Assembly: GCA_965655095.1 (NCBI GenBank)
Contig: OZ296656.1
Location: forward strand, 76,694,001 to 76,758,000
Direction of reading: 5' to 3'
DNA: 64,000 bases
DNA from: Haplodiscus bocki
Lineage: Eukaryota
Both the position numbers and the translations under genes were made by a program. Below the pieces are notes generated by a model that had not been told where the DNA came from, did not search any database, and was given only the letters and a program-made list of their open reading frames with translations. Positions 34,540 through 64,000 of the stretch are shown here, piece by piece (within the stretch, counting starts at the first letter, position 1; each line of letters opens with the position of its first letter).

Positions 34540-37500
34540 TTAGAAAGCATTCGATTGGTTGGAACACACTACAATTTCCAAATTGTCTTCTCTGTGTGCC
34601 CATGATCTAGCAATGTTTTCAGCTAAGGGGACGGCTATGGTAAAAGAAACAATGCTTTGCTTGACATTGACATAAAGTGAAGCAGCATCGAGCCATTCTT
34701 TTTCAAAAAGTCGGATTCTCTGGCCATTCGTCCAGTTGAAACCGGTAACATAGGCACAATCTATCCACGGCATTCGATTTGGCACCCTCGTGAATGCCAA
34801 CCCCAAGCCTGCATTATGCTCTCGAGCACGACGAACCAAGGACATACTTGAGCCAATATACAATACATTTTTTTTGAGGAACACTTTGCAGCAAGTAACA
34901 ATAACCCAAAGCTTGCGTCGGCAAGTCTTGCGCTGAAGGCGGAAAAAGGGATGCTTTGGCAAGGTCAATTGCAGCATCTTTCGTGCAATTTTTGTCAAAA
35001 TTTCATGGGTTAGGTCAGACCACTGTGATCTCTTACGAGTTAGATCAAGAATCGCTTTCTTGTTAGCTTCTCTCGTTCCCACGAACGTTACGTGACTTAA
35101 ACTTCTTACTCTACTCATGACCACATACAGTTGCTCCGGAAGCCACAAACTAAACTCCCTAGACTCCACAATTTGAGTGGCCACCATAGGCAACGTTTCA
35201 CCCATGGTTTTGTGGATGGTCGAAGCTACAAACAACTTCAGAGGGAACTGGATTCTGCGGCATACTGTTTTATGGTTCAACCGAACTGTCACGCCGATCT
35301 CTTTGTTGATAACAACACATCGCCAAGTGTTTGTCATAACTGACAGCGGAGGAATAGTTCGGCAACCAGTTGGAGCTAGAGCAACTGTCACACTCCCATT
35401 TTCAATGCTATCCAAAGACACTAGAACACAAAGTTGGCCTTGATAAGCTGGTATTGATGGTTTATTAACTGTTAATCGTAGAATAGCTCCTGGGTAAAGA
35501 AACAAGGATCCGGGTTCGAGGCATTTCTTGTTGAGGAAATTGAAAGCTGTTGTTGACGCTTCCGTCCAGTTATCAGTGCTGGACAAACACATTTCATCTA
35601 CTGTCATGTGTTCATAATATTGAGTTCCACTGTTTTTAACGTCGGGTATTCTGTTTTCAGTTGCTTTACGCTCAGCTTGCCGTGTAGCGAAAATTCTGAT
35701 ACTATCGCCAGGCACGTCGGACCATGACTTCACAAAGTTGCAATTTTTTTCAATGATTTCCCAAATGCGCTTTGCATTGGCATCTGTTTTGGGGACTGAA
35801 GACATTAGAGACAACAATTCTGGGCCGTTTTTGTTTCGCATCCTAACGAAATTCTACAAGTTGTGGAAGGCGAATGTGGTTAGAGGGAATGACGAGCTCA
35901 TCAGATAGGAACCCGAAGGTGGAGGAAGTTGAAAGAAATCCCCAGTTGCAATGACCAATTTTCCACCGAAAGGAACATAATTTGAGGTTATGACTTGCAA
36001 CACATGATCAAATGCTGCCCATATTTCGCTTCAGATCATCGACATCTCTTGAACAAAAAACACATCAACATTTTGCAGGAACCGGGTTTTAACAGGGGAA
36101 CGCTGTAAGTTGGACAACGCAGTCTTCGCAAGCGACTCAGCAGAAGCATTTCTTTCGACCGGAAAAGGAATTAGGGCATTTAAAGGTTTTCCGGCTAGAG
36201 CAGCAGATCTCTCAGCAGCTGAAGAGGTCACAACACAGGGTAATCCTTGACAAAGGGCATACGCAAGTGATTTCAGCATCACAAAATTTTGCCACTTCCA
36301 GGCGGACCAAAGACAACCTGATGTCTTATGAAAGAGCACAGTCACCACCTGTAAGTATCAATTGACGGCATTAGTCTGTCCAAAGTTTGGCATTGTTCTA
36401 GGTATGATTTTTTACACTGATCAGGGTTTTTTCGTATATTTGGTTTCCAAGGGACTGGCCCATTGACATTTGAATGTAACATGGTCTGTTCATTTGGCAA
36501 ATGAGTGTGAGATGTGAGGAGGAAGGCCACCATTTTACTTTTTTCCAACACCAATTGAAGAGCTAAACCTTCATCATTTTCTTCCATGACATTTCTATCA
36601 AGGGCAAGCGGCAGTGCAGCCGCAAAATGAAGATTGTTCCTTAAAAGGGCTTCGGAAATGACACTATGGGCCTTCAGAAGGTTTTTTTTGAAAAATTTCG
36701 AGGATCCCGGTGTGAAACGTAGTTGTTTTAACAAATACTTACGTGTAACAGCTTTTACCTTCATGTCAGTGACGTAGCTGGGAACAACATTGGCTGCTAT
36801 GAAAGCATCTTTGAATGATTGAACGTTTAAAATGTCCATTTCCGTATAGAAATCTCCCTGAGTTAACAAAAGATGCAGTAACAATTTCGTACGACTGTTT
36901 GGTATAAATGTTGCTATACACAACAACAGCCGTTTCCTCGGACAAACCTTTCCAATGAGCAACAAACTGGCTTTTGTTTCTGCTTCGAAGAACCGGAACG
37001 ACATGTTTTCTCATTTCATTTTTCAGCTTTTTATTCCGCTCATTACTACCTTTCAAACGACAAACGTTAATGATTGATTCTACAGCAGCTGGACGTAATT
37101 TGATGACATACCCTGTGGCATCCACCCAATAAGTTTTGCGGATATTTTTTTCACTAACAGTTCATGATCGCTGGTGACTTTCTCAATTTATGATTTCCAA
37201 CGAACGAACCAACTGTAATAAACCGATAAATTTGAAATGAACATGAGTTCGGGTGGACGAAGTCCGAAAAGGGTAACTTTGCCGGGTGTAACAAAACTGG
37301 TTTCAACATTCGCAAGCAAAAGTATCTGACTTTCCGTGAACTGCCGGTTTTTCGGAAGTTGCAGAACTTCACTGCGCACGCGAACTGCTTCGTTAAAAGT
37401 TGTGCTGAATTTCAATTTGCTGTTATATTTTTCCTTCACAAACCCTGAGCAATATGCTTTTGGAACTGTAGGCACATGTACGAAATCGACGTTTGTGCAA

Positions 37501-45500: not shown

Positions 45501-47660
45501 AAAGAAGCTATTGTCAAAGAACAACGTCCAGAAGTAAGAACTACCATTAAATGAAATTGAAGCAAGTCTTAAAGGAAGCAATGTCTTTGTAGTGAATCTG
45601 TCTCATCACTGACAGACTATTTGACACTTTTTGGCATTTGGTCCACTGACTGAGTCATTAAAGCGTCAAATCTGTCATGGTCTGTACACCTACATGGTAA
45701 ACAGGGGGGTTTAGGTCCACTCTAATTACAAAACCACTGAAAAACGGAATGAAGCGTAAAGGAGGGAAAAAGTGATAGAAGGAAGCTTCTCCTAGTAGCC
45801 TGTGTTCCTCACAGACAGACTCATAAGCAATTCAAAAAACATCATGAAAAAAATAGCACGACCGAGCGCCTTCCCTGTAGAAGAAATAAAACATCAACAC
45901 TCCAATTCACCTGAAATTGCATTGAAGTCTGACCTTTTAAACAACAACCACAGAAAAAAACTGTGCCTATATAACACGCTAATTTACTAAAAGTTGACTG
46001 AAAATAGTGTAAACATTCTTGAAAACACACGAGACTGTCAACGGCCGAGAGTAAAAGCTTATTTTGAGAAAAATACACTTACTTGAAGGCACTTCACCGT
46101 TGTCGCTTCGTTGTAGAAAAGTTTCAACAACAGTGAGATTGTAGCACTTATTGAATGCATGGCAAAAAAGTAATTCTCAAAGTAAGCAAATTGAAACTTC
46201 GGTATGACACATTTCTCCCTAAAAAACAACGATGACTTCTGCCGGAAAGATTCAACAGTTTATAATGATCAAAGGGCGACGGAAAAGACGTTAAGCATAA
46301 ACAAAAATACATTTGTAGAGAAAACATGCCCAGAATTGGCTATCCAATTGTTGTAAAACTTTGGATCCGATGAAAAATCCCAAATATCCCGCCATCTGGT
46401 AATTTTCGCCGTCGCCTCCACTGGGTGGTCCGGAACGTTTTTCAACCTCTCAGGCCGCCCGGGGAGGGACCCGGTAGCGGCACCCCCTGTGGGAAATCTT
46501 ACTTGTAATTTTTGGGTGGAAAAAAATACGATTTTGGAAATGAGCCTATAGAATTGGCTGAAATTTTGCATGTTTTTAGGTATGAGCAAGCTAATCAACA
46601 TTCCCTACTGGCGTTTTCCCGGATTTTTTCTTAAAGTTGGATTTTTTTGCCATTTTGTGACGTCAATTTCGCCTATTTTCCGTTTTTTGACGGTTTTTGG
46701 CCAAAAAGTCCAACTTCGTCCACACAACTAGTATTGCAAGTGGCTGCATGCGGAAAGTACGTCATTCGGTAGGAACAACCAGCTAAAGAAGACTGCTCTA
46801 CAACAATCTGACGTTGACTTATGATGTTTTGAAAATGGTCAAAAAAGGGTGTCAGAGAGGTGTTTTTCAGGTTTAGGGTCCCGTAACTCGTCACACACTG
46901 GTCGCAGCGGTTTCAAGGCGGTACTACCCCTTGTTGCCCATCCATAGGTCAACAAATGTTTAGCAGGGAAAAAGTCCACAAAACAAAGTGGGAAAAAGTT
47001 ATGACCCCTTTTTTGAAAAAAACCACACTTTTTCGAAATTTTGCTCATAAAATGCAATCTGGCGGCATTTTTTTCGTACAAACGGTATTGGTTCATTCTA
47101 AGTTGCAATAGTTAGCCCATTGGATGTAATTGGCTGGTGTGTTTTTGTGTTTCGAAAATTTTTCAATTTTTCGACATTTTTCAGGCCACGAATTTTGACC
47201 CACCTGACAAGATTTTCATGAGAATCGTTGTGATTTAACTGGCCATAACTTTTTTCTGGGGCACTTTATGGATTGGTACCAGCAGCTATAAAAAGCTCCC
47301 CTGGTAGGCAGCAAGGCGTATGTGAAGTTTCAAGTCTTTAGAAGCAGTTTTTCAGAAAGTCTGTGCTCTCAATTTTCAAAACTTCACTACCATTGAAAGT
47401 GGTTTTCAAAAATTTCAGATTTTTTCTATTTTGACAACATTTTATCTTCAGGTGTGGTTCAAATGAAGTTTCAGGACTTCCAAAGCAACGTCTACAGTAG
47501 TAGAAATTAAGCTCCTCAGAGTGACGCCGTTCCCATTCGTCCGCAGGGCAATGGGATCGGCGAACTCTTTCAAAACAAAAAGGTCAAAACTGAAATCTAC
47601 ACTCCGTTCCGGTAACCAGGTGGCCTATCGCCTGTAGCTGACGCAAACAATAGGCGGCCA

Positions 47661-47759
47661 GACTGATAAACAACGCTCCACGTGTCGTCGCACTCAGCCG
47701 GAACGAAGCGTGGCGAAGTGGAGGCAGTGCGACGACACGTGGAGTGTTGTTTATCAGTC
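47661..47759. repeat. 34-bp inverted repeat with 31-nt loop (one per unit; also 49095-49193, 50531-50629, 51967-52065)
   Basis: gactgataaacaac(a/g)ctccacgtgtcgtcgcact - cagccggaacgaagcgtggcgaagtggaggc - agtgcgacgacacgtggagtgttgtttatcagtc. Perfect in units 2 and 3; one G:T in units 1 and 4. Confidence 0.97.
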
Positions 47760-48958
47760 GGTTGTCAGTATTGTGTCAAAATATCTTGTATTTAACATAA
47801 AAAAGGTTTAAACACTCCTAACAACGGCCCTATTTTGACCTTAGCCTCCAGCGCTAGGTGGTCCGGAACGTTTTTCAACCTCTCAGGCCGCCCGGGGAGG
47901 GACCCGGTAGCGGCACCCCCTGTGGGAAATCTTACTTGTAATTTTTGGGTGGAAAAAAATACGATTTTGGAAATGAGCCTATAGAATTGGCTGAAATTTT
48001 GCATGTTTTTAGGTATGAGCAAGCTAATCAACATTCCCTACTGGCGTTTTCCCGGATTTTTTCTTAAAGTTGGATTTTTTTGCCATTTTGTGACGTCAAT
48101 TTCGCCTATTTTCCGTTTTTTGACGGTTTTTGGCCAAAAAGTCCAACTTCGTCCACACAACTAGTATTGCAAGTGGCTGCATGCGGAAAGTACGTCACTC
48201 GGTAGGAACAACCAGCTAAATAAGACTGCTCTACAACAATCTGACGTTGACTTATGATGTTTTGAAAATGGTCAAAAAAGGGTGTCAGAGAGGTGTTTTT
48301 CAGGTTTAGGGTCCCGTAACTCGTCACACACTGGTCGCAACGGTTTCAAGGCGGTACTACCCCTTGTTGCCCATCCATAGGTCAACAAATGTTTAGCAGG
48401 GAAAAAGTCCACAAAACAAAGTGGGAAAAAGTTATGACCCCTTTTTTGAAAAAAACCACACTTTTTCGAAATTTTGCTCATAAAATGCAATCTGGCGGCA
48501 TTTTTTTCGTACAAACGGTATTGGTTCGTTCTGTATTGCAATAGTTAGCCCATTGGATGTAATTGGCTGGTGTGTTTTTGTTTTTCGAAAAATTTTCATT
48601 TTTTCGACATTTTTCAGGCCACGAATTTTGACCCACCTGACAAGATTTTCATGAGAATCGTTGTGATTTAACTGGCCATAACTTTTTTCTGGGGCACTTT
48701 ATGGATTGGTACCAGCAGCTATAAATAGTTCTCCTAGTAGGCGGGAAGGCGTATGTGAAGTTTCAAGTCTTTAGAAGCAGTTTGTCAGAAAGACTATGCT
48801 CTCAATTTTCAAAACTTCACTACCATTGAAATTGGTTTTCAAAAATTTCAGATTTTTTTCTATTTTGACAACTTTTTATCTTCACGGGTGGTTCAAATGA
48901 AGCTGCAGGACTTCCAAAGCAACGCCTAGAACAGTAGAAATGAAGCCCCTCAGAGGGA

Positions 48959-48996
48959 CGCCGTTCCCATTCGTCCGCAGGGCAATGGGAACGGCG
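48959..48996. repeat. 13-bp hairpin capped by cc-GCA-gg (one per unit; also 47525-47562, 28003-28040)
   Basis: cgccgttcccatt-cgtccgcagggc-aatgggaacggcg. Confidence 0.9.
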
Positions 48997-51900
48997 AACT
49001 CTTTCAAAACAAAAAGGTCAAAATTGAAATCTTCACTCCGTTCCGGTACCCAGGTGGCCTTTCGCCAATCGCTCAAGCAAACCATTTGCTGCCAGACTGA
49101 TAAACAACACTCCACGTGTCGTCGCACTCAGCCGGAACGAAGCGTGGCGAAGTGGAGGCAGTGCGACGACACGTGGAGTGTTGTTTATCAGTCGGGTGTC
49201 AGTTTTGTAACAAAAATATCATTTAAATTATTATAGCAAAAGTTAAAATACTCTCAGACAACGGCCCTATTTTGACCTTAGCCTCCAGCGCTAGGTGGTC
49301 CGGAACTTTTTTCAACTTTTTCTGCCGCGCGGGGAGGGACCCGGTAGCGGCTTCCCTTATGGAAAACTTACTTTGGAAAAAACGCTGGAAAAAAATGCGA
49401 TTTTGGAAACGAGCCTATAGAATTGGCTGAAAATTTGCATGTTTTTAGGTATGAGCAAGCTAATCAACAATCCCTAGTGGCGTTTTGCCCAATTTTTTCT
49501 TAAAGTTGGATTTTTTGGCCATTTTGTGACGTCAAATTCGCCTATTTTCCATTTTTTGACGGTTTTTGGCCAAAAAGTCCAACTTCGTCCACACAACTAG
49601 GATTGCAAGTGGCTGCATGCGGAAAGTAAGTCAATCGGCGGGAACAACGAGCTAAAGAACGTTGCTCTACGACAACTTGACGTTGACTTATGATAATTTG
49701 AAAATGGTCAAAAATGGGTGTCAGAGAGGTGTTTTTCAGGTTTAGGTTCCCGTAACTCGTCACACACTGGTCGGAGCGGTTTCAAGGTGGTACTACCCCT
49801 TGTTGCCCATCCATAGGTCAACAAATGCTTAGCAGGAAAAAAGTCCCTAAAACAAAGTGGGAAGAAGTTATGACCACTTTTTTGGAAAAAACCACACTTT
49901 TTCGAAATTTTGGTCATAAAATGCAATCCGGCGGCATTTTTTTCGTACAAAAGATATTTGTTCATTCTGTATTGCAATAGTTAGCCCTTACAATGTAATT
50001 ACCTGGTGTGTTTTTGTTTTTCCAAAACTTTTCATTTTTTTGACATTTTTTGGGGCACGAAATTTGACCTACCTGACAACATTTTCATCAGAATCCTTGT
50101 GTTTCAACTGGCCATAACTTTTTTCTGGGGCACTTTACGGAATGTTACCAGCAGCCATAAATAGTTCCCCTGGTGCGCATCAACGAGTATGTGAAGTTTC
50201 AAGTCATTAGAAATAGTTTGTCAGGAAGAGGACGCGCTCAATTTTCAAAACTTCACCACCATTGAAAATGGTTTTCAAAAAATTCAGACTTTTCCATTTT
50301 TGACATTTTTTTTATCTTTACGGGTGGTTGAAATGAAGTTGCAGGACCTCCAAGACAACATCTAGAGTGCTTGAAAGGGAGTCACTCAGAGTGACGCCGT
50401 TCCCCTTCGTCCGCAGGGCAATGGGAACGGCGAACTCTTTCAAAACAAAAAGGTCAAAATTGAAAACATCACTCCGTTCCGGTAACGAGGTGGCCTATCG
50501 CCAGTAGCTCATGCAAACCATTGGCTGCCAGACTGATAAACAACACTCCACGTGTCGTCGCACTCAGCCGGAACGAAGCGTGGCGAAGTGGAGGCAGTGC
50601 GACGACACGTGGAGTGTTGTTTATCAGTCGGGTGTCAGTATTCTAACCAGAATATCAATGAAATTAACATAGAAGAAGCAAAAATACATCGTGACAACGG
50701 CCCTATTTTGACCTTAGCCTCCAGCGCTAGGTGGTCCGGAACGTTTTTCAACCTCTCAGGCCGCCCGGGGAGGGACCCGGTAGCGGCACCCCCTGTGGGA
50801 AATCTTACTTGTAATTTTTGGGTGGAAAAAAATACGATTTTGGAAATGAGCCTATAGAATTGGCTGAAATTTTGCATATTTTTAGGTATGAGCAAGCTAA
50901 TCAACATTCCCTACTGGCGTTTTCCCGGATTTTTTCTTAAAGTTGGATTTTTTTGCCATTTTGTGACGTCAATTTCGCCTATTTTCCGTTTTTTGACGGT
51001 TTTTGGCCAAAAAGTCCAACTTCGTCCACACAACTAGTATTGCAAGTGGCTGCATGCGGAAAGTACGTCATTCGGTAGGAACAACCAGCTAAAGAAGACT
51101 GCTCTACAACAATCTGACGTTGACTTATGATGTTTTGAAAATGGTCAAAAAAGGGTGTCAGAGAGGTGTTTTTCAGGTTTAGGGTCCCGTAACTCGTCAC
51201 ACACTGGTCGCAGCGGTTTCAAGGCGGTACTACCCCTTGTTGCCCATCCATAGGTCAACAAATGTTTAGCAGGGAAAAAGTCCACAAAACAAAGTGGGAA
51301 AAAGTTATGACCCCTTTTTTGAAAAAAACCACACTTTTTCGAAATTTTGCTCATAAAATGCAATCTGGCGGCATTTTTTTCGTACAAATGGTATTGGTTC
51401 ATTCTGTGTTGCAATAGTTAGCCCATTGGATGTAATTGGCTGGTGTGTTTTTGTGTTTCGAAAATTTTTCAATTTTTCGACATTTTTCAGGCCACGAATT
51501 TTGACCCACCTGACAAGATTTTCATGAGAATCGTTGTGATTTAACTGGCCATAACTTTTTTCTGGGGCACTTTATGGATTGGTACCAGCAGCTATAAAAA
51601 GCTCCCCTGGTAGGCGGCAACGCGTATGTGAAGTTTCAAGTCTTTAGAAGCAGTTTGTCAGAAAGTCTATGCTCTCAATTTTCAAAACTTCACTACCATT
51701 GAAATTGTTTTTCAAAAATTTCAGATTTTTTCTATTTTGACAACTTTTTATCTTCACGGGTGGCTCAAATGAAGTTGCATGACTTCCAAAGCAACGTCTA
51801 GAGTAGTAGAAGTTAAGCCCCTCAGAGTGACGCCGTTCCCATTCGTCCGCAGGGCAATGGGATCGGCGAACTCTTTCAAAACAAAAAGGTCAAAACTGAA

Positions 51901-52165
51901 ATCTACACTCCGTTCCGGTAACCAGGTGGCCTATCGCCTGTAGCTGACGCAAACAATAGGCGGCCAGACTGATAAACAACGCTCCACGTGTCGTCGCACT
52001 CAGCCGGAACGAAGCGTGGCGAAGTGGAGGCAGTGCGACGACACGTGGAGTGTTGTTTATCAGTCGGGTGTCAGTTTTGTAACAAAAATATCATTTAAAT
52101 TATTATAGCAAAAGTTAAAATACTACCAGACAACGGCCCTATTTTGACCTTAGCCTCCAGCGCTA

Positions 52166-53200
52166 GGTGGTCCGGGCCTCCCCCAACCTCATCCGGCCGC
52201 CTGGGGAGGGTCCCAGAGCCGGCCCCCTCTTTCTGAATTTTGATAGGTGATTTTTTGAGGATATAATTGCGATTTTGGAAACTAACCCTACGATTTTTCT
52301 AATTTTTTGCATACGGCTAGGTATGACAGATCTAAGAACTAATCCCTACTGGCGTTTTCCCGAATTTTTGACTGATGTTGATTTTTTGGCATTTTTTTGG
52401 TGCAAAAATGACGTTTTTTCGAAAAATTGGCAGTTTTTCGTCCCAAAGTCCATTTTCTTCCACACAACTAGATTAGCAAGTGCGGGCATGCAGAAAGTAC
52501 GTCAACTGGTGAGAAGAATAAGCACTAGAACGTTGGTCTACGACAAGTTGACGTGGACTTATGATAATTTGAATGTGTGCAAAAAACGTGCGAGAAGAGA
52601 CATTTCCAAATATAACGTCACATAACTCGATAACGATCATGTTTCGCGGTCCAGCATAAGAGTGCTTTTTTGTTGCCAGTCTATAGCGGAACAAATGTTG
52701 TGGAGAAAAAGTTCCTGAGAAAATTCTATGAAAAAAGTTATAACCGTTTTTTTGGGCGAAAAATCGATTTTTTCGAAATTTTTTGCAAAATAGTCGAAGT
52801 GATTGCATTTTTTCGCAAACACAGATATGGAGACCACCATAATCGCATTAGGCAGCCCAAGGGCGGCACTACACCAGGGTTAGACAGTTTTTTCAAAATT
52901 ATTTTCAAGACTTTGATTTTTTCGGCCGTCAATTTTGTCTCGAGAGAGAAAAAACAAAAAAGACAATTTCGTCCAAAACACACCATAACTTCTTTCAGAG
53001 ACTTTTTAGAGGAGTAGATAACCCTTACAAAAGTCCATGACACATACATTTCACGTCCCATGCATTTTTTGAGTTTTTGTTAACCAATGCAAAGAAAGTT
53101 GATTGACATGAAATTTTGATAATTTCTATCTTCGAACTTTCACTTGTTTCGTCTACAGAAATTAATGACAGAGCTCATACAAGTTTCAGTGATTTTTTCC
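52166..53200. repeat. Strongly diverged fifth unit of the 1435-bp array
   Basis: Collinear blocks: gattttggaaa, atccctactggcgttttccc, ccacacaactag, gcatgc.gaaagtacgtca, acaaatg, aaaaagttat, ccataactt. Neither large hairpin is present. Confidence 0.8.
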
Positions 53201-53743
53201 CTTCAATACATGTGGCTGGGTAAAATTATCCTCATGTCAAACAATTGTTCAACGAATTACCTCTAACACTGAAGCCATAAATGTCTTCCAAATGGTTCTT
53301 CGTTTGGTTTTACTATGGGCCACCTGTTGAAGCTTCCAGGCTTCTCTGGTGGTGGGGGTTCCATGGACCCCCCTGATGGTTGATCAATCAATCGGAGGTG
53401 CTAGATCTGCCTCAAGGGGCGGTGATGAATAGGGTAGGTAATTTATGTCGGTTAGTTTTTCTGCTCTTTTACCGAGCTCTCCCTAAGGACCACTTTTTTT
53501 CAAGTTTCAGGTTCTGTTCTCTTTTCTACAGAGGTAAGTTTTGCGTTCAAGTAAGTCGTCTATTGATCTGAGGTTAATCTGTATTGTTCATCCGTATAGT
53601 GGCGCTAATTGCGTCTACTCTATGACTGCAGCTTTCAAATGTTCATCCGAAATACTTCTTTTCAATGACTGTAATCACAGTGGCGATTAGTGCGTCGAGT
53701 AATGGATGCTGTGTCTGACAATTTCTCCTTTTTCCAGATAACC

Positions 53744-54310
53744 ATGTTTCTCGTGCAAGTTAATGATTTCACATTTTCGGCCTACTATGAATCCACAGAG
53801 CAACAGGTACTCATAATTGGGGACTCTCTGCTGCGAAAGTTTAACATGTCACAAACTGATAAACTTTTCTTCCCCGGAGCAAGGGCTGACGACGTTGCGG
53901 CCATCCTCCAGCTCCCACAAATCCGAAGAATTATTCAAAAGTATACAACAATATGCCTTTTTTATGGAGGTAATGCTGTCAACGATTTTCCGAAACAAGG
54001 TATACTTAGACGGGCTCAGACACCGTCTGAAGTTATGTTTGATGTTCACTATGTTTGTGAAGCCTTATCGCAGAAATATACAACGATCTTCATACTAGGA
54101 TGCCAATTAAGGTTGAACGGGACTGCAGACCGTATTAAAGAATTGAATTTACTTCTGAAGAATATCCCCACTAATGCTAAATATGTCAGTTTGTCCTCCA
54201 AGATGGCCACAGAGTATTCTGTACATGAAGACGAAGTCCATCTCAGTTGTCTGGGAATCACGTATCTGAGATCAATCATACTCCACAGAATTTTGAAAAA
54301 AATTGAATGA
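53744..54310 (+). CDS. SGNH/GDSL-type hydrolase (esterase), transposon-associated
   Basis: All four SGNH blocks are present: LIIGDSLLR (S), FPGA (G), YGGNAV (N), EDEVHLS (DxxH). The likely ATG at 53744 follows a polypyrimidine acceptor ttttccag (53737). Confidence 0.88.
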   Translation: MFLVQVNDFTFSAYYESTEQQVLIIGDSLLRKFNMSQTDKLFFPGARADDVAAILQLPQIRRIIQKYTTICLFYGGNAVNDFPKQGILRRAQTPSEVMFDVHYVCEALSQKYTTIFILGCQLRLNGTADRIKELNLLLKNIPTNAKYVSLSSKMATEYSVHEDEVHLSCLGITYLRSIILHRILKKIE

Positions 54311-54887
54311 ATAGTTTCTTCTGGTGGGACAGTTTTTGCGCTGAAATGGCTTGTTGTGATGCTAAACGGTTGCTAATTTGAACTATTTTTGTTTGCTATT
54401 GTGCTGTTGATATTGTTTCGGTTGATACTTTTGTGAATTGCTTTTTTAATGGTTCAGTTCCTTGTATGAAGTGGATATTGGGACAATCTGTTGACAGTTT
54501 GTAATTCATAAATGAACTTTGTAGTTATTGTGTTAGTAACATTTGCTCATACTGGTCGATATTATTTTTAACCAATGATTCTTTTTGTGTAACGATTTTT
54601 TTGTTTCTTCATTTCTATGACACGTTGCGATCTGAGTTTTTATGTTGCTTACTTTTTGGAATTTATTTGCAAATGTTTCATTCAAAAACAGCAAAATGAA
54701 TAATACCAATTTAACACGTTTTTTCTGCACTTGACGTTTTCGATATCTCGTTGTAGAAAAATACTCAATTCTTTTTCTATAAAAGGATGCATTAATATGT
54801 GCTTTTCGGATATGCTTTATGACTTTTGAAACTATTGGCATTTTGCTACTAGTTCCTCTTGACTTCCAGAGCATATGATTGACAATA

Positions 54888-57800
54888 ATGCCCAACAAAT
54901 CGAGTCGAAGTAGAAAGAGAATACTCTCCGATAAGTGTAAAGGTTGCGGTAGAATCAAATCATCTGAAACTTGTGCCTTCTGTCTATCCCGACTGCAATG
55001 TTCCCCTGATCCTGATGTCTTTGAGATATCCGTTTGTACAACTGAGACTGATGACAGCGAGAGCCCTGTTAATTACCCAGATGAAGTTTGTTGTTATGCT
55101 TGCCGAAGGATATCAACCAAATATCACCACTTGGACTTTCAATTGGTCCATGGTATTTATATTTGTAATCGTCAAAAATTCAGACCGGCAAAAACAACAG
55201 AAATTGTTCCCTTGTGTCAAACTTGTAATATCTACCTTAACCCGGAAGCTGAAGCTTTTGCTACAACAGCCACGTTTAAACATGCCTGGCCTTGTGTTTT
55301 TTGGTATATCCTTTCAACTGAGGACGTCTCAATTAATTTTTGGCAATACATTCCCATAGAAATGAGGAGCAGTTGGATCAATAAAACCGCCTTGAGTAAT
55401 ATTGTTTTCTGGAGTAGGATGGAATTAGTGAGCGTCCCAGTTTTTGCTGACCTGACCAACCGGAGGCAGCACTTCCATAAATTTAAGCAACAGTGGCTCC
55501 TGAATGACATGGTTAAAAGTGTTAATGAAGAGTATTTTCCCTGCGTCAAATGTCCAGTTGGTTGCGAGGAGTTCATCGACGAGTGTGGTTCAATTAGTTT
55601 TGTTCACTATCTCGGAAAAATAGTTCCCAATTTCAATAACTTTGAAACAAACCCCAACGATTTTTTACGAGGTATCAGAAGTGACTATGAATTAACTGAC
55701 TACCTGTTTGACTCGGATCCCAGATCCCCTTTCAAGAAACCTAGTATTGTTATTGATAACACAGGAATATCCATTCTAACTTGTAGGGATCATGATAAGA
55801 AAGTAAAAGATTACTACTTACATGTACCTAGGCATCCGTCAGGCCGTGTTTTCAACCCTCTGGCTGATCGATTTGCACCCGCCGTTTTGAGCACACGAGT
55901 AAGGAAACCTTTTCAAGAAAATTTCTCAACGGCTTCCTATAAGATGCTTCAACTAAACCATTCTTTTTCGGGAATTAATACTTGTTTTTTATCGGTGCAA
56001 CGGAATTTTGATAGAGTTACCGACGAAAGCATCGAACATGAGTCTTTTTATTTACATACCAGGAAAGATACAGAAATTGTGCTGAAGAAACTCGTCCAAA
56101 ACGGTTCGCTTAGTCAAAAAATAGGTGAGGCCATTCTGAAAAACCGCAATGAACGGTGGCTCGCACAAAATGAACAATTCCTCAACCACACTAATTTTGT
56201 TCCTTTGGAGACAGTAAGTTTCATTCGCTACATTAATCAATATCCTAACATCAACCCAATGACTACCATTGAGGAGCAGGAGGAGGAAGAGGTGGAGCAG
56301 GAATCCCTGGGTGATGAAAGCAGCGGTTACATTGAGGACGTTGACCATCAAGCGCCATGCGGCATAGATTACTCACAAGAGTCACCTTCTGGAACTTCTG
56401 TGGTTGAAAGTGCGGACACCTCAGGTTCAAACACCCTCCAGGAAGCAAACTTTTGTCAACAGGAACTCTTACAACGCATTGTATTTCCTTGTGTGAAACC
56501 GCTAGATAGAACTTTGGGGGCGCCTCCAAAAACGTTTGTGGTAGGATCAGATTCAGCTAAAATTTTGATTGACATGTCAGCCAACTCCGTCCTTTTCATG
56601 AGTAATGTGCTCCAAGCTTCGTTACGAAAACATGGTTTCTCTTGGAAACTTTCGGATTGTTTCCATGTTAAAAAAGGAAAAACGTTCAAACAATCCTTTG
56701 CTACAGCCCTACAAAATTTACGACATGAAATTGACGAGATTTCCATGTACGAAATTTTGTCCAAACTGCCTTTTGCTAACGTAGCCACAATAGAAAATCG
56801 ACAGAGTTCATTAGGATTCTCGAATATTGCCCCGGAAAAAGATTTTCAGGTCTATGTCAGTACTTGTCACCGAAATAGATCACTGCTTGCGCCAGAAGAA
56901 AGCTTCAATACATCATCAGGTTTGTTTCGTCTTGTGTACGTTGTGGCTGATTCACCAGTCAATAAGACATTTTTCCGATACAAGTTTTGTGAAGAGTGGT
57001 GGGATGTCTCTTCACCAGGTAGATCAAAAAAGACCTGTCAAAAACACCTTTCTTCTTTGATTTCTAACAACGCTTGGAAAGCTTTGATATACGAGAAAAT
57101 GGATTCAGATTTAAGCCAACAAGAACGTGATCGCAATGTAACCAGTGTTTTTGGTCAAGATAAAGTCTTCTGCGATAATCATGCTCTTCCCCTGTCATGT
57201 GATTTCCCGAAAAATTCTTATGTTTGTCAGTTTGATGAAAGTTGCTACCGAAAATCGGCGTGGAGATGTCCCTCTGAAAATTGTGAGAGCGCTCTCTGTA
57301 AAAGCCACTTTGAGGAAATCAATGAAAAATCTGTTGTAGTTCCACACAGCGGCAAAAATTCTTCCGCCGACAACGATGATGAGATGTCCACCGTTGAAGT
57401 TGAGGAAGTTACGGACAACGAACTTGATGGTTTAGAAACTGAAAACATTGCTCTCCTGGAAATGCCTACCGACGCCGGTTTCGTGGACGACGTTCAGCTT
57501 CAGCAGACTGATGCTGGTGCCGAGTCTGTACATTTTCACTCTAATGACGATTTGCACGCAGTTGGAAGCCACGTTATATTGAATGCGGTTTGTGCGTTGC
57601 TAAATCGACCCCGGAACCCTACCAATTTCCGTAAAAAAGAATGGCGTTTCCTGCAGTCCTTCGTTGCTAAATGTCCCGGTGAGTCAGTCCCATTGACTTT
57701 TCCTGAGGCAGCCCTTCTGCCGTCAATTTATTATATAATGGCCGAGCAATCAATCTGTGGGGCCGTCCCAGCCCCTCTTTTTTCTCCCTCGCTTTCCAAA

Positions 57801-60800
57801 AGGTTCAATTTCGCTGACATAATATCTCATATCAAAAATCGTTTAAAGGATTTTAGTCTTCTCACATCCACTGACCCACGAGTTATCCAATTCTATTTCG
57901 ATTGTTTCTTGAATTTTCAAGCTCAATACTGCGATACGCGATTCGTTTTGAACAGAGGTCTGCAAGAGTTTCGCTCACAAGAGTCCGAAAAAAGTGAGGC
58001 TCGGGTTAGAATGAATGAAGAAGACAGCCGCAAAGTAGTCAATGAGTTAGCTGCTGCAATTCGCTCGGAAGAGCCAACCTTTTTTCTGACATTCACTCTT
58101 AACCAATCGAGAATGTTTGGCGTGGCTCCTCTGTACCGCCTAGTCGAAAAGAATGTTAGAAACTTAAGTGCCTCCAAGCGAAAAAACATCATAGAGGGTT
58201 TTATGCCGCTATACATGAGACTTTGGGAACGAGCAGCTACTTTTTTCATAAAGTACTTGGAAAAGTCAACTGAAAAACCTTTAGGTACTATCAAAAACAT
58301 TTTCCCCAGGTTTGAGTTCCAGACGTCTAAGGGCAATGCTCCGCATTTGCATGTAATTATTTGGACGACTGAAAGCAAAAATGATCCTGTGATACAAAAA
58401 AAGATAGTTGGATCTTTTCGACAGCTGCTGCAGGAGTTACAAATGGAGATGCAGGATCCATCAAATAACATTGTGCAAAATGAGAAAGATGCTGATGACC
58501 TTGTTCAGTTAGCGCGGGCCACGTTAAGTCATACTTGCGAGCGTGCTGGTTTCAGATGCCATAAAAAATGTGACAACAGTGGGAACATGGTCTGCCGCTT
58601 CAAAGTTTTCGATCCATGCTTTCAGACGTTCTTCAAAGCAATTGATAGGCCGCATTCGAATGAGGTTTGGGACTTGCTGAAAAGCTTAAACTTAGCAAAG
58701 TTAGTTGAAGGTTTTCATGCCGGTTATGAAATTTGCCAAGAACTGCAAGGTGGTAGGTATAACTACGCCGCAGACTTTGGTGAAACCTTTTCACCTGTCA
58801 TAACCAAACTGTTCACTGTGATTCAAGCTAGCATGAATTCTCTACTTTGCGACCGAGTTATGTCGGCAACGTATCTCGCCAAATATGCGGCGGGCGTGGA
58901 GGAGCACGCTACTGTTCAAATCAGTGGAGAATCTAATGACACAGTATCGGTGAGCGTGAAGAAAATGAAAAATATAAAAATCGCGGGGGCTCAAATTGCA
59001 GCCAAAACTGACGAAGAAAAAACATCGAGTAACAACAATTGTAGAATTTTGTCATCCACTGAGTGTATTTGGTCTATTTTGGATTTGAAATACGTTTTCC
59101 CCACTTATGTTTGTGTGCATGTCAACACGCTTCCACTCGAGAATCGCGGAGGTATCGTACGAAAAAAATCTTATGTGCGACAGGTGGATAGACCTGGTCA
59201 GCATGATCAGGCGTTGGCGCTCGTAAAAATCAGACAGTTGAAGCAGTTTGAAGACAATCGGCTTTTTACGAAAACCCAAGAGAAAACTTTACGCGAATCC
59301 CATGATTCGCGTTTGAGCATTGATAAGGTTTCCCTCTTCGCTGTCAGGCCTCCTGAGCTGCTTTTCATTCGTGACATAGAATTTTATTTTCGGCATTTTT
59401 CGTTTGAGAAAATTAGTTTTCGTTCGGCAATTGATTGCGTTAAATCTTCGCTGCATGAAAGTTGTTGGGTGGATGGTGTTGGTCATTTGATAAGATTGCG
59501 ATCAGACAGTCTTCCCAATTTCATGACATTTCTTTCCGAAAATCGTCAGGATTCAAACCCTAGATATTCTTTTTTCGCATCTTTCTACGAAAAACGTTTC
59601 TCATCCCGAAGTTGCGTCAACTTTTTGTCGGATGAAAGAGATGGTTTTAAGAAACCTGCGGTTGTAGTGTTCCCTAATGTTATTCCGAAACACGCTCCTA
59701 ATTTTTTAATTAACTTCTTGCTGCAGTTTGGCAAGTACGAAACAGAATTTGACTTGTATAACAGTGCACTCTTGACTGTCGCATACGAGAAAGCAGGTTT
59801 ACTGGAGGACTCCACCAACGTGACTCAGGAAGATCTGAATAAACTTTTGAAAAAATTCATTTTGCGCCGCGTTGTTTTCGTCCCTGGCTCGCATGTTTCG
59901 CAGGATAGACAAATACTCGAAGCAAAAGCTGCTTTCAGCTTACTCATGGATTGCCCTGAGAACCTGGACACTCCCACTATCATTTACAACGCTTTGCGAG
60001 ATGAATGCTCCCAGGAACTTCAGAACGCTATTAATAACAAATTTTGTGCTGTGGCGTCACAGCTCTACTCTTTAGTACAAGATTCGGCGAAACCTGACAT
60101 CGAGTCGATACTCAATAAACAGGCAAGCGATCCCCTTCGTTACAATCCCCTGTGTTCCAACGATATCAAATTCAACGAAGAACAAAAAGTAGTTCTGGAA
60201 AGTTTACTGAGAACCCTTGATACTTTCGTGAGCTCTGCTCCTCGATTTTTTCGATTCCAGTTTGTGGTAGGGATGCCAGGTTCTGGGAAAACGTTTGTTA
60301 TTGTACATGCACTCCTTTATGCTTTGTGTATCGGACTTGACGTAATGGTTACCTCACTGAGTAGTGAACGGGCGATGCAATTCTCCGGTGTTCATATACA
60401 CGAACTTTTTGGTCTTCCGGTCGCTAAACGTTTGATCGTTGATGAAATCGCTGAAAACGCTCTGAAAAAACTTAATTGTGATCCTATTCGAACAACAGTT
60501 CTTAGGAGGATAGATATCCTGTATTTCGAAGAGATAGGTATGGTCTCGGCCGAAGAATTTGCGGCGATTGACTTGATCATGCAAAAGGTACGAGACAATT
60601 ACTCGCCTTTCGGCGGAGTTTTGGTGCTTGGAACCGGTGATCCGAAGCAACTTCCGCCACCGCAAGGTCGATTGCTCTGGACATCCCCAATCATACTTAC
60701 AAGCGTTACAATGCACGCCTTAGAGAAATGCGTTCGGATGGTTGACGTTGTCGGTCGCGAGTTTTTGAATATTTTGTCAAGTCCAAAAATTACCGAAACC

Positions 60801-62063
60801 GAAATGGAGATTTTGATGACAACTTTCTCAGATGAATGTAATTTTTGCGAACTCGACAACAGCCCTATGGACGCAGTTCGGATTTTTGGAACCAGGGCCG
60901 CGGAGAGTAAAGCTATTGAAACTCAAATCGACAGGGTTAGACGGTCTGGATCAAAAGTAATTGAAATATTAAGTTGCGACGAAGTGAAAACTAACCCCAG
61001 TAGCAATTGGAAACCGGTTGCAAAGCATTACTCCAAGGTACTAAACAAGCTCTGTCTAGAGCCCGAGGTTTTATATTGTTATCAGGATGCGTTACTCCGG
61101 ATCACCGTCAATATTCCGAGTCAAAATGTGTCGCAGGGGCAAATGTGTGTATTCAAAAAATTTGATGGTGTCAAAAAAATAACAGTGATTGTTGCTCTTC
61201 CCGGTGTAAGGAAGCTACCTCCATGTAATTCCAATGGCAGTTACCTCTTCGAGGAAAACGGTTGGTTCGAAATTACTTTAACAAAGCAAGCCGGTTTCGT
61301 TCATGGCCATAAGGGGTCATCTATTAGGAGATCTCAGTTTCCACTGAAAAATTTTATGGCAATGACAATACACAAAGCAATGGGCGAGACCATTGGTAAA
61401 ATTGTCACGAAAATTGATTGCGTAGATCGGGCCTATAATTTGTGGGAGAAAGAGCAGCTTTACGTTCTTGTTAGTAGAGTCCAAAATCTGAAAGACATAA
61501 CGTTTTTAGGTGACAAGAATACAACCCTTTTGTCGATCAAAAATTTGTTAGGTAAGTCTTCTCAGTGGGACGATTACACGGAAAGATTAGTTCGAACAGC
61601 AAGTAATCAAGATAATGCCGTGTTCGACATGGCAGCGTTATCGCCGTTTAGACCTCGGAAAATTGAGCTTCCTGTCGGAGAAGTTGGATTTGTCTACCTG
61701 CTTGTTAGTACTCGGAATATAAGTGCGTGTTACGTTGGCGAAACAAGTAATTTGCGCAGACGTCTTTTGGAACACAATTCCGGTAAAGGAGCTTTTTTCA
61801 CGAATCAGAGTCATTTAAGGCCTTGGGGTGTAATGTGTTTTGCTACCGGTTTCAGTGACTGTCCTCAATCGAACCGAAAAGAGCGAAAGCACCTGGAGCA
61901 AAAAATTCATGACAATTTTTTTCAAAATTTCAACGCGTTCAACCGTCAAGGATCACCTTCTGAAGTTCTTCAGATTTTTCTGTCGTGCGTATCAGAACAT
62001 AAGTCTCAGGTCTGTGGTTTGCGTGCAGTTATAACCGGAAAAATTCTCAGCCGACAGAGCTAG
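54888..62063 (+). CDS. Intact Helitron/Helentron-like Rep-helicase with C-terminal SLX1-like GIY-YIG nuclease (~2390 aa)
   Basis: Rep motif 1 PTFFLTFT (58074), HUH RFEFQTSKGNAPHLH (His 58344/58350), Y2 motif YLAKY (58872-58886). PIF1 motifs GMPGSGKT (60270), EEIGMV, PFGG..GDPKQLPP, RSQFPL..MTIHK, QLYV..SR. GIY-YIG GFVYLL...YVG..RR..EHN.G...RPW...GF (from 61686). Confidence 0.95.
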   Translation: MPNKSSRSRKRILSDKCKGCGRIKSSETCAFCLSRLQCSPDPDVFEISVCTTETDDSESPVNYPDEVCCYACRRISTKYHHLDFQLVHGIYICNRQKFRPAKTTEIVPLCQTCNIYLNPEAEAFATTATFKHAWPCVFWYILSTEDVSINFWQYIPIEMRSSWINKTALSNIVFWSRMELVSVPVFADLTNRRQHFHKFKQQWLLNDMVKSVNEEYFPCVKCPVGCEEFIDECGSISFVHYLGKIVPNFNNFETNPNDFLRGIRSDYELTDYLFDSDPRSPFKKPSIVIDNTGISILTCRDHDKKVKDYYLHVPRHPSGRVFNPLADRFAPAVLSTRVRKPFQENFSTASYKMLQLNHSFSGINTCFLSVQRNFDRVTDESIEHESFYLHTRKDTEIVLKKLVQNGSLSQKIGEAILKNRNERWLAQNEQFLNHTNFVPLETVSFIRYINQYPNINPMTTIEEQEEEEVEQESLGDESSGYIEDVDHQAPCGIDYSQESPSGTSVVESADTSGSNTLQEANFCQQELLQRIVFPCVKPLDRTLGAPPKTFVVGSDSAKILIDMSANSVLFMSNVLQASLRKHGFSWKLSDCFHVKKGKTFKQSFATALQNLRHEIDEISMYEILSKLPFANVATIENRQSSLGFSNIAPEKDFQVYVSTCHRNRSLLAPEESFNTSSGLFRLVYVVADSPVNKTFFRYKFCEEWWDVSSPGRSKKTCQKHLSSLISNNAWKALIYEKMDSDLSQQERDRNVTSVFGQDKVFCDNHALPLSCDFPKNSYVCQFDESCYRKSAWRCPSENCESALCKSHFEEINEKSVVVPHSGKNSSADNDDEMSTVEVEEVTDNELDGLETENIALLEMPTDAGFVDDVQLQQTDAGAESVHFHSNDDLHAVGSHVILNAVCALLNRPRNPTNFRKKEWRFLQSFVAKCPGESVPLTFPEAALLPSIYYIMAEQSICGAVPAPLFSPSLSKRFNFADIISHIKNRLKDFSLLTSTDPRVIQFYFDCFLNFQAQYCDTRFVLNRGLQEFRSQESEKSEARVRMNEEDSRKVVNELAAAIRSEEPTFFLTFTLNQSRMFGVAPLYRLVEKNVRNLSASKRKNIIEGFMPLYMRLWERAATFFIKYLEKSTEKPLGTIKNIFPRFEFQTSKGNAPHLHVIIWTTESKNDPVIQKKIVGSFRQLLQELQMEMQDPSNNIVQNEKDADDLVQLARATLSHTCERAGFRCHKKCDNSGNMVCRFKVFDPCFQTFFKAIDRPHSNEVWDLLKSLNLAKLVEGFHAGYEICQELQGGRYNYAADFGETFSPVITKLFTVIQASMNSLLCDRVMSATYLAKYAAGVEEHATVQISGESNDTVSVSVKKMKNIKIAGAQIAAKTDEEKTSSNNNCRILSSTECIWSILDLKYVFPTYVCVHVNTLPLENRGGIVRKKSYVRQVDRPGQHDQALALVKIRQLKQFEDNRLFTKTQEKTLRESHDSRLSIDKVSLFAVRPPELLFIRDIEFYFRHFSFEKISFRSAIDCVKSSLHESCWVDGVGHLIRLRSDSLPNFMTFLSENRQDSNPRYSFFASFYEKRFSSRSCVNFLSDERDGFKKPAVVVFPNVIPKHAPNFLINFLLQFGKYETEFDLYNSALLTVAYEKAGLLEDSTNVTQEDLNKLLKKFILRRVVFVPGSHVSQDRQILEAKAAFSLLMDCPENLDTPTIIYNALRDECSQELQNAINNKFCAVASQLYSLVQDSAKPDIESILNKQASDPLRYNPLCSNDIKFNEEQKVVLESLLRTLDTFVSSAPRFFRFQFVVGMPGSGKTFVIVHALLYALCIGLDVMVTSLSSERAMQFSGVHIHELFGLPVAKRLIVDEIAENALKKLNCDPIRTTVLRRIDILYFEEIGMVSAEEFAAIDLIMQKVRDNYSPFGGVLVLGTGDPKQLPPPQGRLLWTSPIILTSVTMHALEKCVRMVDVVGREFLNILSSPKITETEMEILMTTFSDECNFCELDNSPMDAVRIFGTRAAESKAIETQIDRVRRSGSKVIEILSCDEVKTNPSSNWKPVAKHYSKVLNKLCLEPEVLYCYQDALLRITVNIPSQNVSQGQMCVFKKFDGVKKITVIVALPGVRKLPPCNSNGSYLFEENGWFEITLTKQAGFVHGHKGSSIRRSQFPLKNFMAMTIHKAMGETIGKIVTKIDCVDRAYNLWEKEQLYVLVSRVQNLKDITFLGDKNTTLLSIKNLLGKSSQWDDYTERLVRTASNQDNAVFDMAALSPFRPRKIELPVGEVGFVYLLVSTRNISACYVGETSNLRRRLLEHNSGKGAFFTNQSHLRPWGVMCFATGFSDCPQSNRKERKHLEQKIHDNFFQNFNAFNRQGSPSEVLQIFLSCVSEHKSQVCGLRAVITGKILSRQS

Positions 62064-62163
62064 AGTTGTGTAAATACTTGCTTTTCTTCATACACCGTGG
62101 AGTGGAGTAGGAAGCGACCTTCTAGGATGAACTGCGACATGTGAGTATGAGGCACTGCACAAT

Positions 62164-62461
62164 GTTCTACTCCCATAGTGAACTTGTGCTGTTTCTCTAC
62201 ACTTCACCAAAACCTAAATGTGCAGCGGGACGTTCTACTGGGATAGTGAACTCCTGCTGTTTTAATCATCTAAGACCTGTTCGAATTTTCTGAAAGCACA
62301 AAGTTCTACTTGGATAGTGAACTTGTGTTTCAAAGATCAACTTTTAGTGTAGTGAATTTAATTAAGGCTTTTTCCTCCTAATGTCACTAGAAGTCAACAT
62401 GTGAACCAAAAAGGTAGTTACAGAGAAAAGACAAAAGCACAGTTCTACTTCCATAGTGAAC
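62164..62461 (+). repeat. Four iterated imperfect-palindromic 20-mers GTTCTACT-N3-ATAGTGAAC downstream of RepHel
   Basis: Copies at 62164-62183, 62232-62251, 62303-62322 and 62442-62461. Confidence 0.9.
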
Positions 62462-62494
62462 GTGTAATATTTTGACATGAAAAGTATATGATCC

Positions 62495-62780
62495 CTACCG
62501 GTTGAATCAGTATTGCTGTTTCCATTAATAAATGTGTTTTTAAGACTTTAAACTTTGACATTTAAATTTGTAAAAAGAATTTGAAAATCAGCTCTTGTGT
62601 ATCATCTTGTTTCTCTGCAGCTTCTAGAAGTACCTTATCCATACCGTTGGAATCAATATTGCTGTTTCTATTAGTAAATTTGTTATTAAAACTTGAATCT
62701 TTGACATTTAGACTTGTAAAAAGAATTTGAAATTCAGCTCTTGTCTTTCAACTTATCTCTCTGCAGCTTCTGATAAGTGC
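62495..62780. repeat. Two diverged tandem copies of a ~147-bp unit
   Basis: tacc.....aatca.tattgctgttt at 62495 and 62642; shared ctttgacattta, tgtaaaaagaatttgaaa and ctctgcagcttct. Confidence 0.9.
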
Positions 62781-62819
62781 TCGTTAGATTATTGTTTTGT
62801 TTGAAATCCATAAATTTTG

Positions 62820-62962: not shown

Positions 62963-63640
62963 ACAGTAATTAAATTTACTTGAAATAATAGTATGCTTGA
63001 TTATGATGTTTTTCTTAATGGAGAATTAAAAAGGCTTAAGAAACTGACGACTTCATTGACATGTCTTCGATGGTGATCAGGTGACAGTCAATTTCACTTA
63101 ATTATAGTAGTGAAAACTTCAAGACTTATCTCAAATTTTTACAAATTTTGTACTTAATTGTGAATTTGAAATGGATACAAACTATGATAATTGAGTTTCC
63201 CTTTTTTCCAGCTTTTTTGTCCCACTAGAAGGTTTTCGTTTGCGTCTGCTGACAAGCTTCAAACATTTCAGCTCACTGAATTTCCGGGAGGTTTTTTACT
63301 GTTTATCTCTTAAGAGGACAAGCTTGAGAACGCCCAATTTCGAAATTTTGGGAGCGCTCACATTGTAAACAGCTTTCCTTTCATTTCCATCGGCAAATTA
63401 TCAGTTTTTTCTTGAAACTAGTGCTAATTTTTTTGGACAGTTGCATGGATTCTTTCCGTAGTTCTAATCTAATGCAAACAGCAAGTTTTACAATTCGTTG
63501 AAGATTGTTTTCCGAAGCGTTTGAAGAATCGGTGTTTAAATCGTAGATTCCGTTGAAGCGACACTTGAAAAATTAAACGCTTGTAAAAAATCGGCGGAGT
63601 TTGTTTGTAACACTTGACCATTTCAGACTTCCAAATAATA

Positions 63641-64000
63641 ATGAACTCCGCTTTTCCCAGCTCCCTGAATCCCGTTGCCGCCAGAGCATTGGCCGAAAAT
63701 TTTGAAGAGATAACTTTTTCCGATTTCTGCTCGGGCAATGATTGCGAAGATAAAAAACTTTACCTGATCTATTTGCACGGCAAGCGCTCAGCGGAGCCTC
63801 TGAAATATCGACAGTCGACATCTGCCCGAACAATAGTGCCGTTTAAGAACAAACTTCAACAGACGAATTATGATCGGTTCTTTCTGTTAGGAGATCCCAA
63901 GTCAAATCGGGTTGTTGCCCTGTTCAGCTCAAATGACAAAGAAAGTCGAATTTTGACACGCTATCATACAGAGATACACCCAGGAAAAGTTGTGGCTATC
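63641..64000 (+). CDS. Uncharacterised ORF truncated by the window edge (possibly OB-fold-like), not in the ORF track
   Basis: 120 open codons from ATG 63641: MNSAFPSSLNPVAARALAENFEEITFSDFCSGNDCEDKKLYLIYLHGKRSAEPLKYRQSTSARTIVPFKNKLQQTNYDRFFLLGDPKSNRVVALFSSNDKESRILTRYHTEIHPGKVVAI. Preceded by acceptor-like catttcag (63626). Confidence 0.6.
   Translation, partial: MNSAFPSSLNPVAARALAENFEEITFSDFCSGNDCEDKKLYLIYLHGKRSAEPLKYRQSTSARTIVPFKNKLQQTNYDRFFLLGDPKSNRVVALFSSNDKESRILTRYHTEIHPGKVVAI

Follow-up and report, generated by a model that had tools for sequence, protein, structure and literature searches.

Helitron-like elements (HLEs), the rolling-circle transposons of eukaryotes, are at present sorted into Helitron1 and Helitron2/Helentron. 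In the model drawn from Helraiser, the Rep nuclease nicks an end of the element, the helicase peels off a strand and Rep joins this strand at the target. Helentrons, the HLE2 subgroup with a C-terminal apurinic/apyrimidinic endonuclease (AP endonuclease, APE; for example P0246), encode a Rep domain, a PIF1 helicase and then a second, C-terminal nuclease in one open reading frame (ORF), and no nuclease other than the AP endonuclease is known to us in fusion with such a Rep-helicase (RepHel) protein. Here we describe an ORF of the same general plan from Haplodiscus bocki, at positions 54888-62063 of a window of 64,000 nucleotides (contig OZ296656.1 of assembly GCA_965655095.1, positions 76,694,001 to 76,758,000 of the forward strand; the window is this whole stretch). 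Very probably, the ORF encodes the transposase of a Helitron-like element, an autonomous rolling-circle DNA transposon from a large and old clade in which a GIY-YIG nuclease of the SLX1 type is fused to the transposase and kept by selection, and which lacks the AP endonuclease.

A GIY-YIG domain has been reported in HelenSM92, an HLE2 family of Sphagnum magellanicum, where it is described as ‘captured and transposed’ (HELIANO, PMC11417382). This is the single published Helitron-like element with GIY-YIG found in our literature search; it is one moss family, likened to the present element by description only. The same work proposes DUF6570 upstream of Rep as a marker of HLE2 (PMC11417382). Our search found no Helitron lineage defined by GIY-YIG, no combination of Helitron and SLX1 and no third Helitron group, within a coverage that leaves out Repbase and most subscription papers, so that an earlier description is possible; GIY-YIG in Helitrons also goes unmentioned in Heringer and Kuhn 2022. 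An earlier sequence-only reading of this stretch could not tell whether the architecture was already catalogued, and the answer is a divided one, with one HLE2 family carrying GIY-YIG in print (HelenSM92) and no described lineage found. Outside the rolling-circle elements, Penelope-like retroelements combine a reverse transcriptase with a C-terminal GIY-YIG endonuclease (PMC6431247). They parallel APE-bearing long interspersed nuclear elements (LINEs) as the GIY-YIG clade parallels APE-bearing Helentrons, but they are retroelements and their GIY-YIG is of another subtype.

The reading frame is free of stops from 54879 to 62063 on the plus strand. It counts 2,394 codons if it begins at the first TTG, or 2,391 if it begins with the ATG at 54888, whose methionine (M1) is invariant in the family alignment. 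As the DNA has about 40% G+C, an open frame of 2,391 codons cannot be a product of chance. Motifs and Pfam matches agree that this one uninterrupted ORF joins a two-tyrosine HUH Rep, a PIF1 helicase and a C-terminal nuclease, just as the sequence-only reading had it (Table 1). The Rep motifs FFLTFT, HLHVIIW and YLAKYAAG stand at amino acids (aa) 1065, 1153 and 1329, the Pfam PIF1 match covers aa 1762-1924 (E 2.6e-12), and the C-terminal motifs GFVYLL, YVGET, EHNSG and RPWG are found at aa 2267, 2282, 2295 and 2311. The Pfam family of AP endonucleases, Exo_endo_phos, has no match in the window ORF or in 19 of its relatives, in line with the proposal that a GIY-YIG domain stands in place of the Helentron APE. 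The region in front of Rep, rich in cysteine and histidine, is presumed from its sequence to bind zinc or DNA; Pfam scans of the N-terminal 1,000 aa give no family, just zinc-finger hints below threshold.

Rep and helicase are of the Helitron kind. The columns of H1153/H1155 and Y1329/Y1333 show little or no variation in alignments of 25 and 91 sequences. A profile of 91 family Rep domains has a sole match among solved structures, Helraiser (7lcc_A, E 9.9e-7), and this alignment spans motif 1 (TCN), the HUH motif and the YxxKY motif (KYLFKY in Helraiser). Likewise, an AlphaFold2 model of Rep (aa 1029-1424), with a predicted local distance difference test score (pLDDT) of 90, gave a single significant match in Foldseek (E<=0.001), again 7lcc_A at E 7.5e-6, followed by non-significant matches to viral HUH Reps. 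In profile searches, the helicase part matches solved Pif1 helicases as well as Helraiser. Helraiser, an HLE1 element (PDB 7LCC), is therefore the only solved structure matched by both the Rep profile and the Rep model, and it shares motif 1, HUH, YxxKY and a downstream PIF1-type helicase, although with 11% identity in the fold match the two are very remote relatives. HLE1 differs in being without an extra nuclease. HLE1 elements begin with 5'-TC, end in 3'-CTRR, carry a 3' hairpin and insert between A and T; the 5' end of the window element is not TC, although CTAG is found at unit junctions.

The C-terminal domain is predicted to have an SLX1-like fold with its catalytic residues intact. The Pfam GIY-YIG match at aa 2267-2324 exceeds the cut-off of 22.6 bits both in the whole protein (30.6 bits) and for the domain by itself (36.6 bits), so that the C-terminal 125 aa do match a GIY-YIG profile. 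Among PDB sequences, the best phmmer match is SLX1 (6seh_C, E 2.9e-6), and bacterial UPF0213 proteins are matched too. The AlphaFold2 model of the domain (pLDDT 89) contains the beta-beta-alpha-beta-alpha core, and the top 11 Foldseek matches to it are all SLX1 or At-HIGLE (E 9e-7 to 1.6e-4), with UvrC and I-TevI at E>1; the nearest shapes in the ESM Atlas are a diatom GIY-YIG cluster (template modelling score, TM, 0.83) and a fungal SLX1 (TM 0.73). These sequence and fold matches back the earlier assignment of the C-terminal signature to the SLX1/UPF0213 type. SLX1 and At-HIGLE, the best matches on both counts, share with the domain the signature Y..YIG.T....RRL.(E/Q)HN.G....T....RPW....GF....FE..W, and the catalytic positions are conserved across 119 diverse members (Y 93%, Y 84%, R 82%, H 85%, N 98% and E 84%). 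Unlike SLX1, the window domain has no RING/SLX1_C part and no sign of an SLX4 partner, and it is fused to a helicase: Pfam finds no SLX1_C or RING match, nothing follows the GIY-YIG domain in the protein, and in the model the last 70 aa fold into two helices and a strand, with just two cysteines and one histidine. Since the RING/SLX1_C part is missing, the domain is best called SLX1-like and not an SLX1 orthologue.

The fusion of transposase and GIY-YIG nuclease is a trait of a whole clade, not a one-off. A word-indexed protein search yielded about 25 clusters of 1,375-2,853 aa with PIF1 plus GIY-YIG; in a Pfam scan of 19 of these, PIF1 was found in 17, GIY-YIG in 14, Helitron_like_N in 13 (at E<=0.001, best E 8.7e-11) and OTU, a domain known from HLE2, in two. 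An exhaustive search of 1.84 billion protein representatives returned 7,145 matches, 317 of them at E<=1e-30. The best 150 of the 7,145 all have E<=1e-63, and those among them that extend beyond the helicase all carry a C-terminal GIY-YIG domain. Furthermore, a hidden Markov model of the family's own GIY-YIG domain matches 130 of 172 collected proteins, always at the C-terminus directly after the helicase, the others being truncated pieces; what had been proposed as a family trait thus extends to the clade. Named hosts are Styela clava, Cyprideis torosa, Perkinsus olseni, diatoms (Atlas clusters) and Hyalella azteca, in which the domain is degenerate (P0025, which with P0020 is among the few members with degenerate GIY-YIG motifs), and the window family itself is present at 91-95% identity in ‘coral metagenome’ runs. 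The GIY-YIG-bearing clade, a large and old branch found in marine animals and protists, has hardly been described, and because the Pfam Helitron model detects it poorly, it may be under-annotated in corals, tunicates, crustaceans, Perkinsus and diatoms.

Selection on the nuclease can be read from a sister family (P0003), whose protein is 62% identical to the window ORF and of which at least five intact 2,361-aa copies lie on different contigs. Between three of its sublineages (dS about 0.2), the ratio of non-synonymous to synonymous substitution rates (dN/dS) is 0.15-0.18 over the whole ORF, 0.11-0.16 in Rep, 0.09-0.12 in the helicase and 0.22-0.23 in the GIY-YIG domain. This last value indicates that the nuclease has been retained by selection along active lineages and speaks against a mere passenger; purifying selection on the nuclease in turn implies that the element needs it.

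For placement among Helitron-like elements, word-indexed searches turned up clade members alone. A profile search added two Helentrons, a pair of proteins with DUF6570, a Helitron without it and bacterial Pif1, and three sequences served as references, namely the two APE-bearing Helentrons (P0246 and P0248, outgroups in which Exo_endo_phos is present) and the DUF6570-less Helitron. The best-scoring relative of the Rep-helicase profile outside the clade is the flounder Helentron P0246 (Helitron_like_N, DUF6570, PIF1, Exo_endo_phos), at 156 bits, with 55 for Rep and 98 for the helicase; a helicase-APE fragment reaches 116 bits, the DUF6570-less Helitron 75, and Helraiser 84, in this last case via the helicase alone. 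A helicase tree with bacterial Pif1 as root unites 55 clade members with an approximate likelihood-ratio support (SH-aLRT) of 100. Their stem measures 1.16 changes per site, and both the two Helentrons (support 97) and the other Helitron fall outside the group. The clade differs from Helentrons in its second nuclease (GIY-YIG of the SLX1 type, not APE), in having no DUF6570, in an N-terminal region of about 1,000 aa and in its own long branch in the helicase tree, outside the two Helentrons sampled. The idea of a distinct Helitron-like lineage put forward in the sequence-only reading agrees with this single long-stemmed branch, as far as three references go. Judged from these sequences, the clade appears distinct and leans to the Helentron side rather than to Helitron1.

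The element also behaves like a transposon, in that the window holds a decayed copy, a copy with a 99.44% identical ORF lies elsewhere, and non-autonomous units share the element's ends. The second copy (L001, in an ENA assembly) matches window positions 52147-64000 at 99.25%, and the flanks upstream of 52147 differ between the two. Within the ORF, 40 differences in 7,185 nt comprise 13 synonymous and 26 non-synonymous changes and one stop (codon 812), a near-neutral pattern that fits neutral decay after a recent duplication or insertion. Logan contigs from two samples of the same organism contain exact stretches of the window ORF, plus variants diverged by 3-8% at higher depth. Being intact and young, the window copy may still be mobile.

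The decayed copy on the minus strand is a member of another family of the clade, not of the same element. In tblastn, the window ORF finds pieces that are 26-36% identical within 34735-41542 (minus strand), and P0010 matches 34642-42598 (minus strand) at 50-73% aa identity, running over frames -1, -2, -3 and -2; this closer match, over broken frames, is what identifies it. The diverged copy had been said to end (34540-34910) in the same nuclease domain as the intact one. A GIY-YIG domain is indeed there, with a Pfam score of 27.7 bits, but GYCYLL (34906-34889) and LYIGSS..EHNAG..FEKEW (34863-34693) lie in separate frames with a frameshift between them, so that the contiguous GIY/YIG reading had been taken across a frameshift inside the domain.

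The autonomous element is some 12-13 kb long and carries three genes, ORF1, the transposase and ORF3, in both the window family and the sister family. Its copies are embedded in head-to-tail arrays of non-autonomous units of ~1.43 kb, and in the window it follows directly on such an array. The first ~440 bp of these units resemble the beginning of the autonomous element, and their last ~36 nt occur in it as well. All unit junctions have the form ...CGGCCCTA-N(8-9)-AGCCTCCAGCGCTAG/GTGGTCCGG..., and at these junctions (...GCGCTAG/GTGGTCCGG) CTAG is found while the 5' end is not TC. Every autonomous copy seen adjoins another unit at the same short sequence, ...CTAG/GTGG..., and no insertion with ordinary flanks was found in the window, L001 or L002-L005. 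The same family of ~1,433-bp units and the same junction sequence flank autonomous copies of the sister family (L002-L005, 1483-8307 and 20062-27086). As one unit family flanks two transposase families with 62% protein identity, the pool of short units may serve several autonomous families. The clade forms satellite-like arrays.

If transposition follows the Helraiser model, Rep would nick the end of the element, the helicase would unwind the strand 5' to 3', and the single strand would be transferred to a new site; the GIY-YIG domain would then supply a second cut that is beyond the ability of Rep, the job presumed for the Helentron APE. The kinship with SLX1 favours a flap, fork or junction made by the fused helicase as the substrate of this cut, and we tentatively give such an assignment somewhat less than an even chance. 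Only a little less likely is that the nuclease, instead of resolving flaps or junctions, is a target-site or second-strand nickase, as in Penelope-like GIY-YIG or in the APE that LINEs and Helentrons carry. The domain does occupy the position of the Helentron APE, the autonomous copies all adjoin another unit at ...CTAG/GTGG..., and, as the RING/SLX4-binding part of SLX1 is missing, the choice of substrate need not equal that of SLX1-SLX4; yet the nearest solved relatives are structure-selective nucleases and not site-specific nickases, and no target site is definable here. If such a nickase cuts at the conserved end of the element itself, as it may, this would account for the head-to-tail arrangement of the units. 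A further reading, that of a captured passenger which plays no part in transposition, is a common view of accessory Helitron domains; it would fit the wording of the HELIANO paper (PMC11417382), which terms the HelenSM92 domain ‘captured’ and accessory domains often fragmentary, and would fit the degenerate motifs of P0020 and of P0025, the latter from Hyalella azteca. Against this, the domain is in frame and in the same C-terminal place in 130 of 172 proteins across a deep clade, its catalytic residues are 82-98% conserved and dN/dS within it is 0.22, and this conservation of position, residues and sequence makes a passenger very improbable. Still less credible is the idea that the ORF belongs to the host as a domesticated gene or to an integrated virus. 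Its length, its intactness and its two conserved neighbour genes speak for this, but the many copies and decayed copies, the near-neutral change between the youngest copies, the non-autonomous derivatives with shared ends, and Pfam scans with no capsid or other viral gene all disfavour the host-gene and viral-gene readings.

Several results nevertheless weigh against the reading that we prefer, of an autonomous Helitron-like transposon from a distinct clade with a nuclease of its own. Of the profile matches suggested in the sequence-only reading, PIF1 and GIY-YIG are found in the window protein, but Helitron_like_N, although matched by 13 of 19 relatives, scores 16.5 bits against a cut-off of 28.9, a weak match. 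The HLE2 marker DUF6570 is absent from all 19 members scanned (at E<=0.001) and from all ten pre-Rep regions (at E<=10). The node that joins the clade, the Helentrons and the Helitron is without resolution in a tree with just three references, and so few references place the clade neither inside nor outside HLE2. The cleavage substrate of the GIY-YIG domain is a prediction from sequence. As all copies in the window, L001 and L002-L005 adjoin other elements, true termini, target site, empty sites and duplications are unreadable, and the junction and terminal hairpins, folded as single-stranded DNA, are no better than those of shuffled sequence. HLE2 elements have short, asymmetric inverted repeats at their termini, a hairpin at either end and a target between T and T; here, a GC-rich palindrome lies at a distance of 35-65 nt from the 5' junction. 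Instead of two insertions, the window copy and L001 could represent a single locus in two structural haplotypes. Finally, the suggestion that the element may still be active draws on the intact copy and on a second copy 99.4% identical to it, but no RNA run holding the window sequence appeared in the run search.

A deep and species-rich GIY-YIG clade would show that rolling-circle transposons acquired a second nuclease on at least two occasions, with folds that are unrelated. Non-LTR retroelements have likewise taken up both kinds, APE in LINEs and GIY-YIG in Penelope-like elements. Such repeated recruitment argues that the second cut is a real mechanistic need, a point that is open for Helentrons, and the intact window copy offers a natural protein for probing it. 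A bolder reading, which we think rather unlikely, is that RepHel-GIY-YIG elements are a third major eukaryotic rolling-circle lineage ranking with Helitron1 and Helitron2/Helentron, whose nuclease would attack resident copies at their conserved end or next to it; new copies would then insert there and so build mixed head-to-tail arrays. If true, this would be a self-targeting, satellite-building mode of transposition.

Table 1. Features of the RepHel-GIY-YIG element and its relatives, in window positions.
Feature	Position	Strand	Remarks
Decayed copy from a different family of the same clade, nearest P0010	34642..42598	-	broken into four or more frames
GIY-YIG remnant of the decayed copy (last ORF)	34693..34906	-	Pfam 27.7 bits, above cut-off
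Head-to-tail array of four ~1,433-bp non-autonomous units	46421..52162	+	
Junction of the ORF-bearing element with the preceding unit (...GCCTCCAGCGCTAG/GTGGTCCGG...)	52147..52170	+	L001 similarity begins here
Upstream accessory ORF1, 206 aa, with GDS, GGN and D..H motifs	53690..54310	+	conserved in the sister family
Transposase, intact single ORF, 2,391 codons plus stop: Cys/His-rich N-terminus, Rep, PIF1, GIY-YIG	54888..62063	+	
N-terminal ~1,030 aa, conserved family-wide, many near-invariant Cys/His	54888..57971	+	no Pfam family
Rep nuclease, aa 1029-1424: motif 1 FFLTFT, HUH H1153/H1155, tyrosines Y1329/Y1333	57972..59159	+	
PIF1-type helicase of superfamily 1B (SF1B), Walker A GMPGSGKT at aa 1795	60171..61547	+	Pfam and profile matches
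C-terminal GIY-YIG, SLX1 type, aa 2267-2391: Y2270, Y2282, R2292, H2296, N2297, E2337	61686..62060	+	
Start of downstream accessory ORF3, interrupted by the window end	63612..64000	+	355 aa in L001; continues at L001 16231-17298

The two accessory genes are conserved between the window family and the sister family. The upstream ORF1 has 206-260 aa, with 31% identity between families (E 6e-28), and its motifs suggest a putative SGNH hydrolase; Pfam gives no match, and the PDB just a non-significant one to 4c1b_A, the esterase-type ORF1p of a zebrafish L2 LINE (E 1.2). The downstream ORF3 has 345-355 aa and 53% identity between families, and neither Pfam nor PDB sequences match it. Directly 3' of the transposase stop, at 62157-62771 (L001 14774-15388), four copies of a ~32-nt motif (GCACAATGTTCTACT...ATAGTGAACTTGTG) are followed by two 146-bp tandem repeats, and by their sequence these repeats look like iterons.

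Within the array, a conserved stem (GGAGTGTT...AACACTCC) is found near the 3' end of the units, at 47740-47830 and at the same phase of each unit, around ~55 nt that differ strongly between units. In front of the L001 copy, a ~55-nt block (TACCTACAGTTA.GCCTCCTCTGGTAATTGGTACCCT.GCCTCCACTGGGTGG) precedes the 5' junction and recurs ~1,055 bp upstream (L001 3690-3740 and 4745-4790), and this recurrence indicates that another type of unit lies there. An old, decayed unit also stands apart from the array, at 27138-28180: this lone fragment of 1 kb has neither unit end and aligns with the middle part of the 1.43-kb unit at 82% identity. A separate tandem repeat occupies 1-4547; it repeats every ~1,415 bp, its copies are 99.5% identical, and it is unrelated to the Helitron-like units by BLAST.

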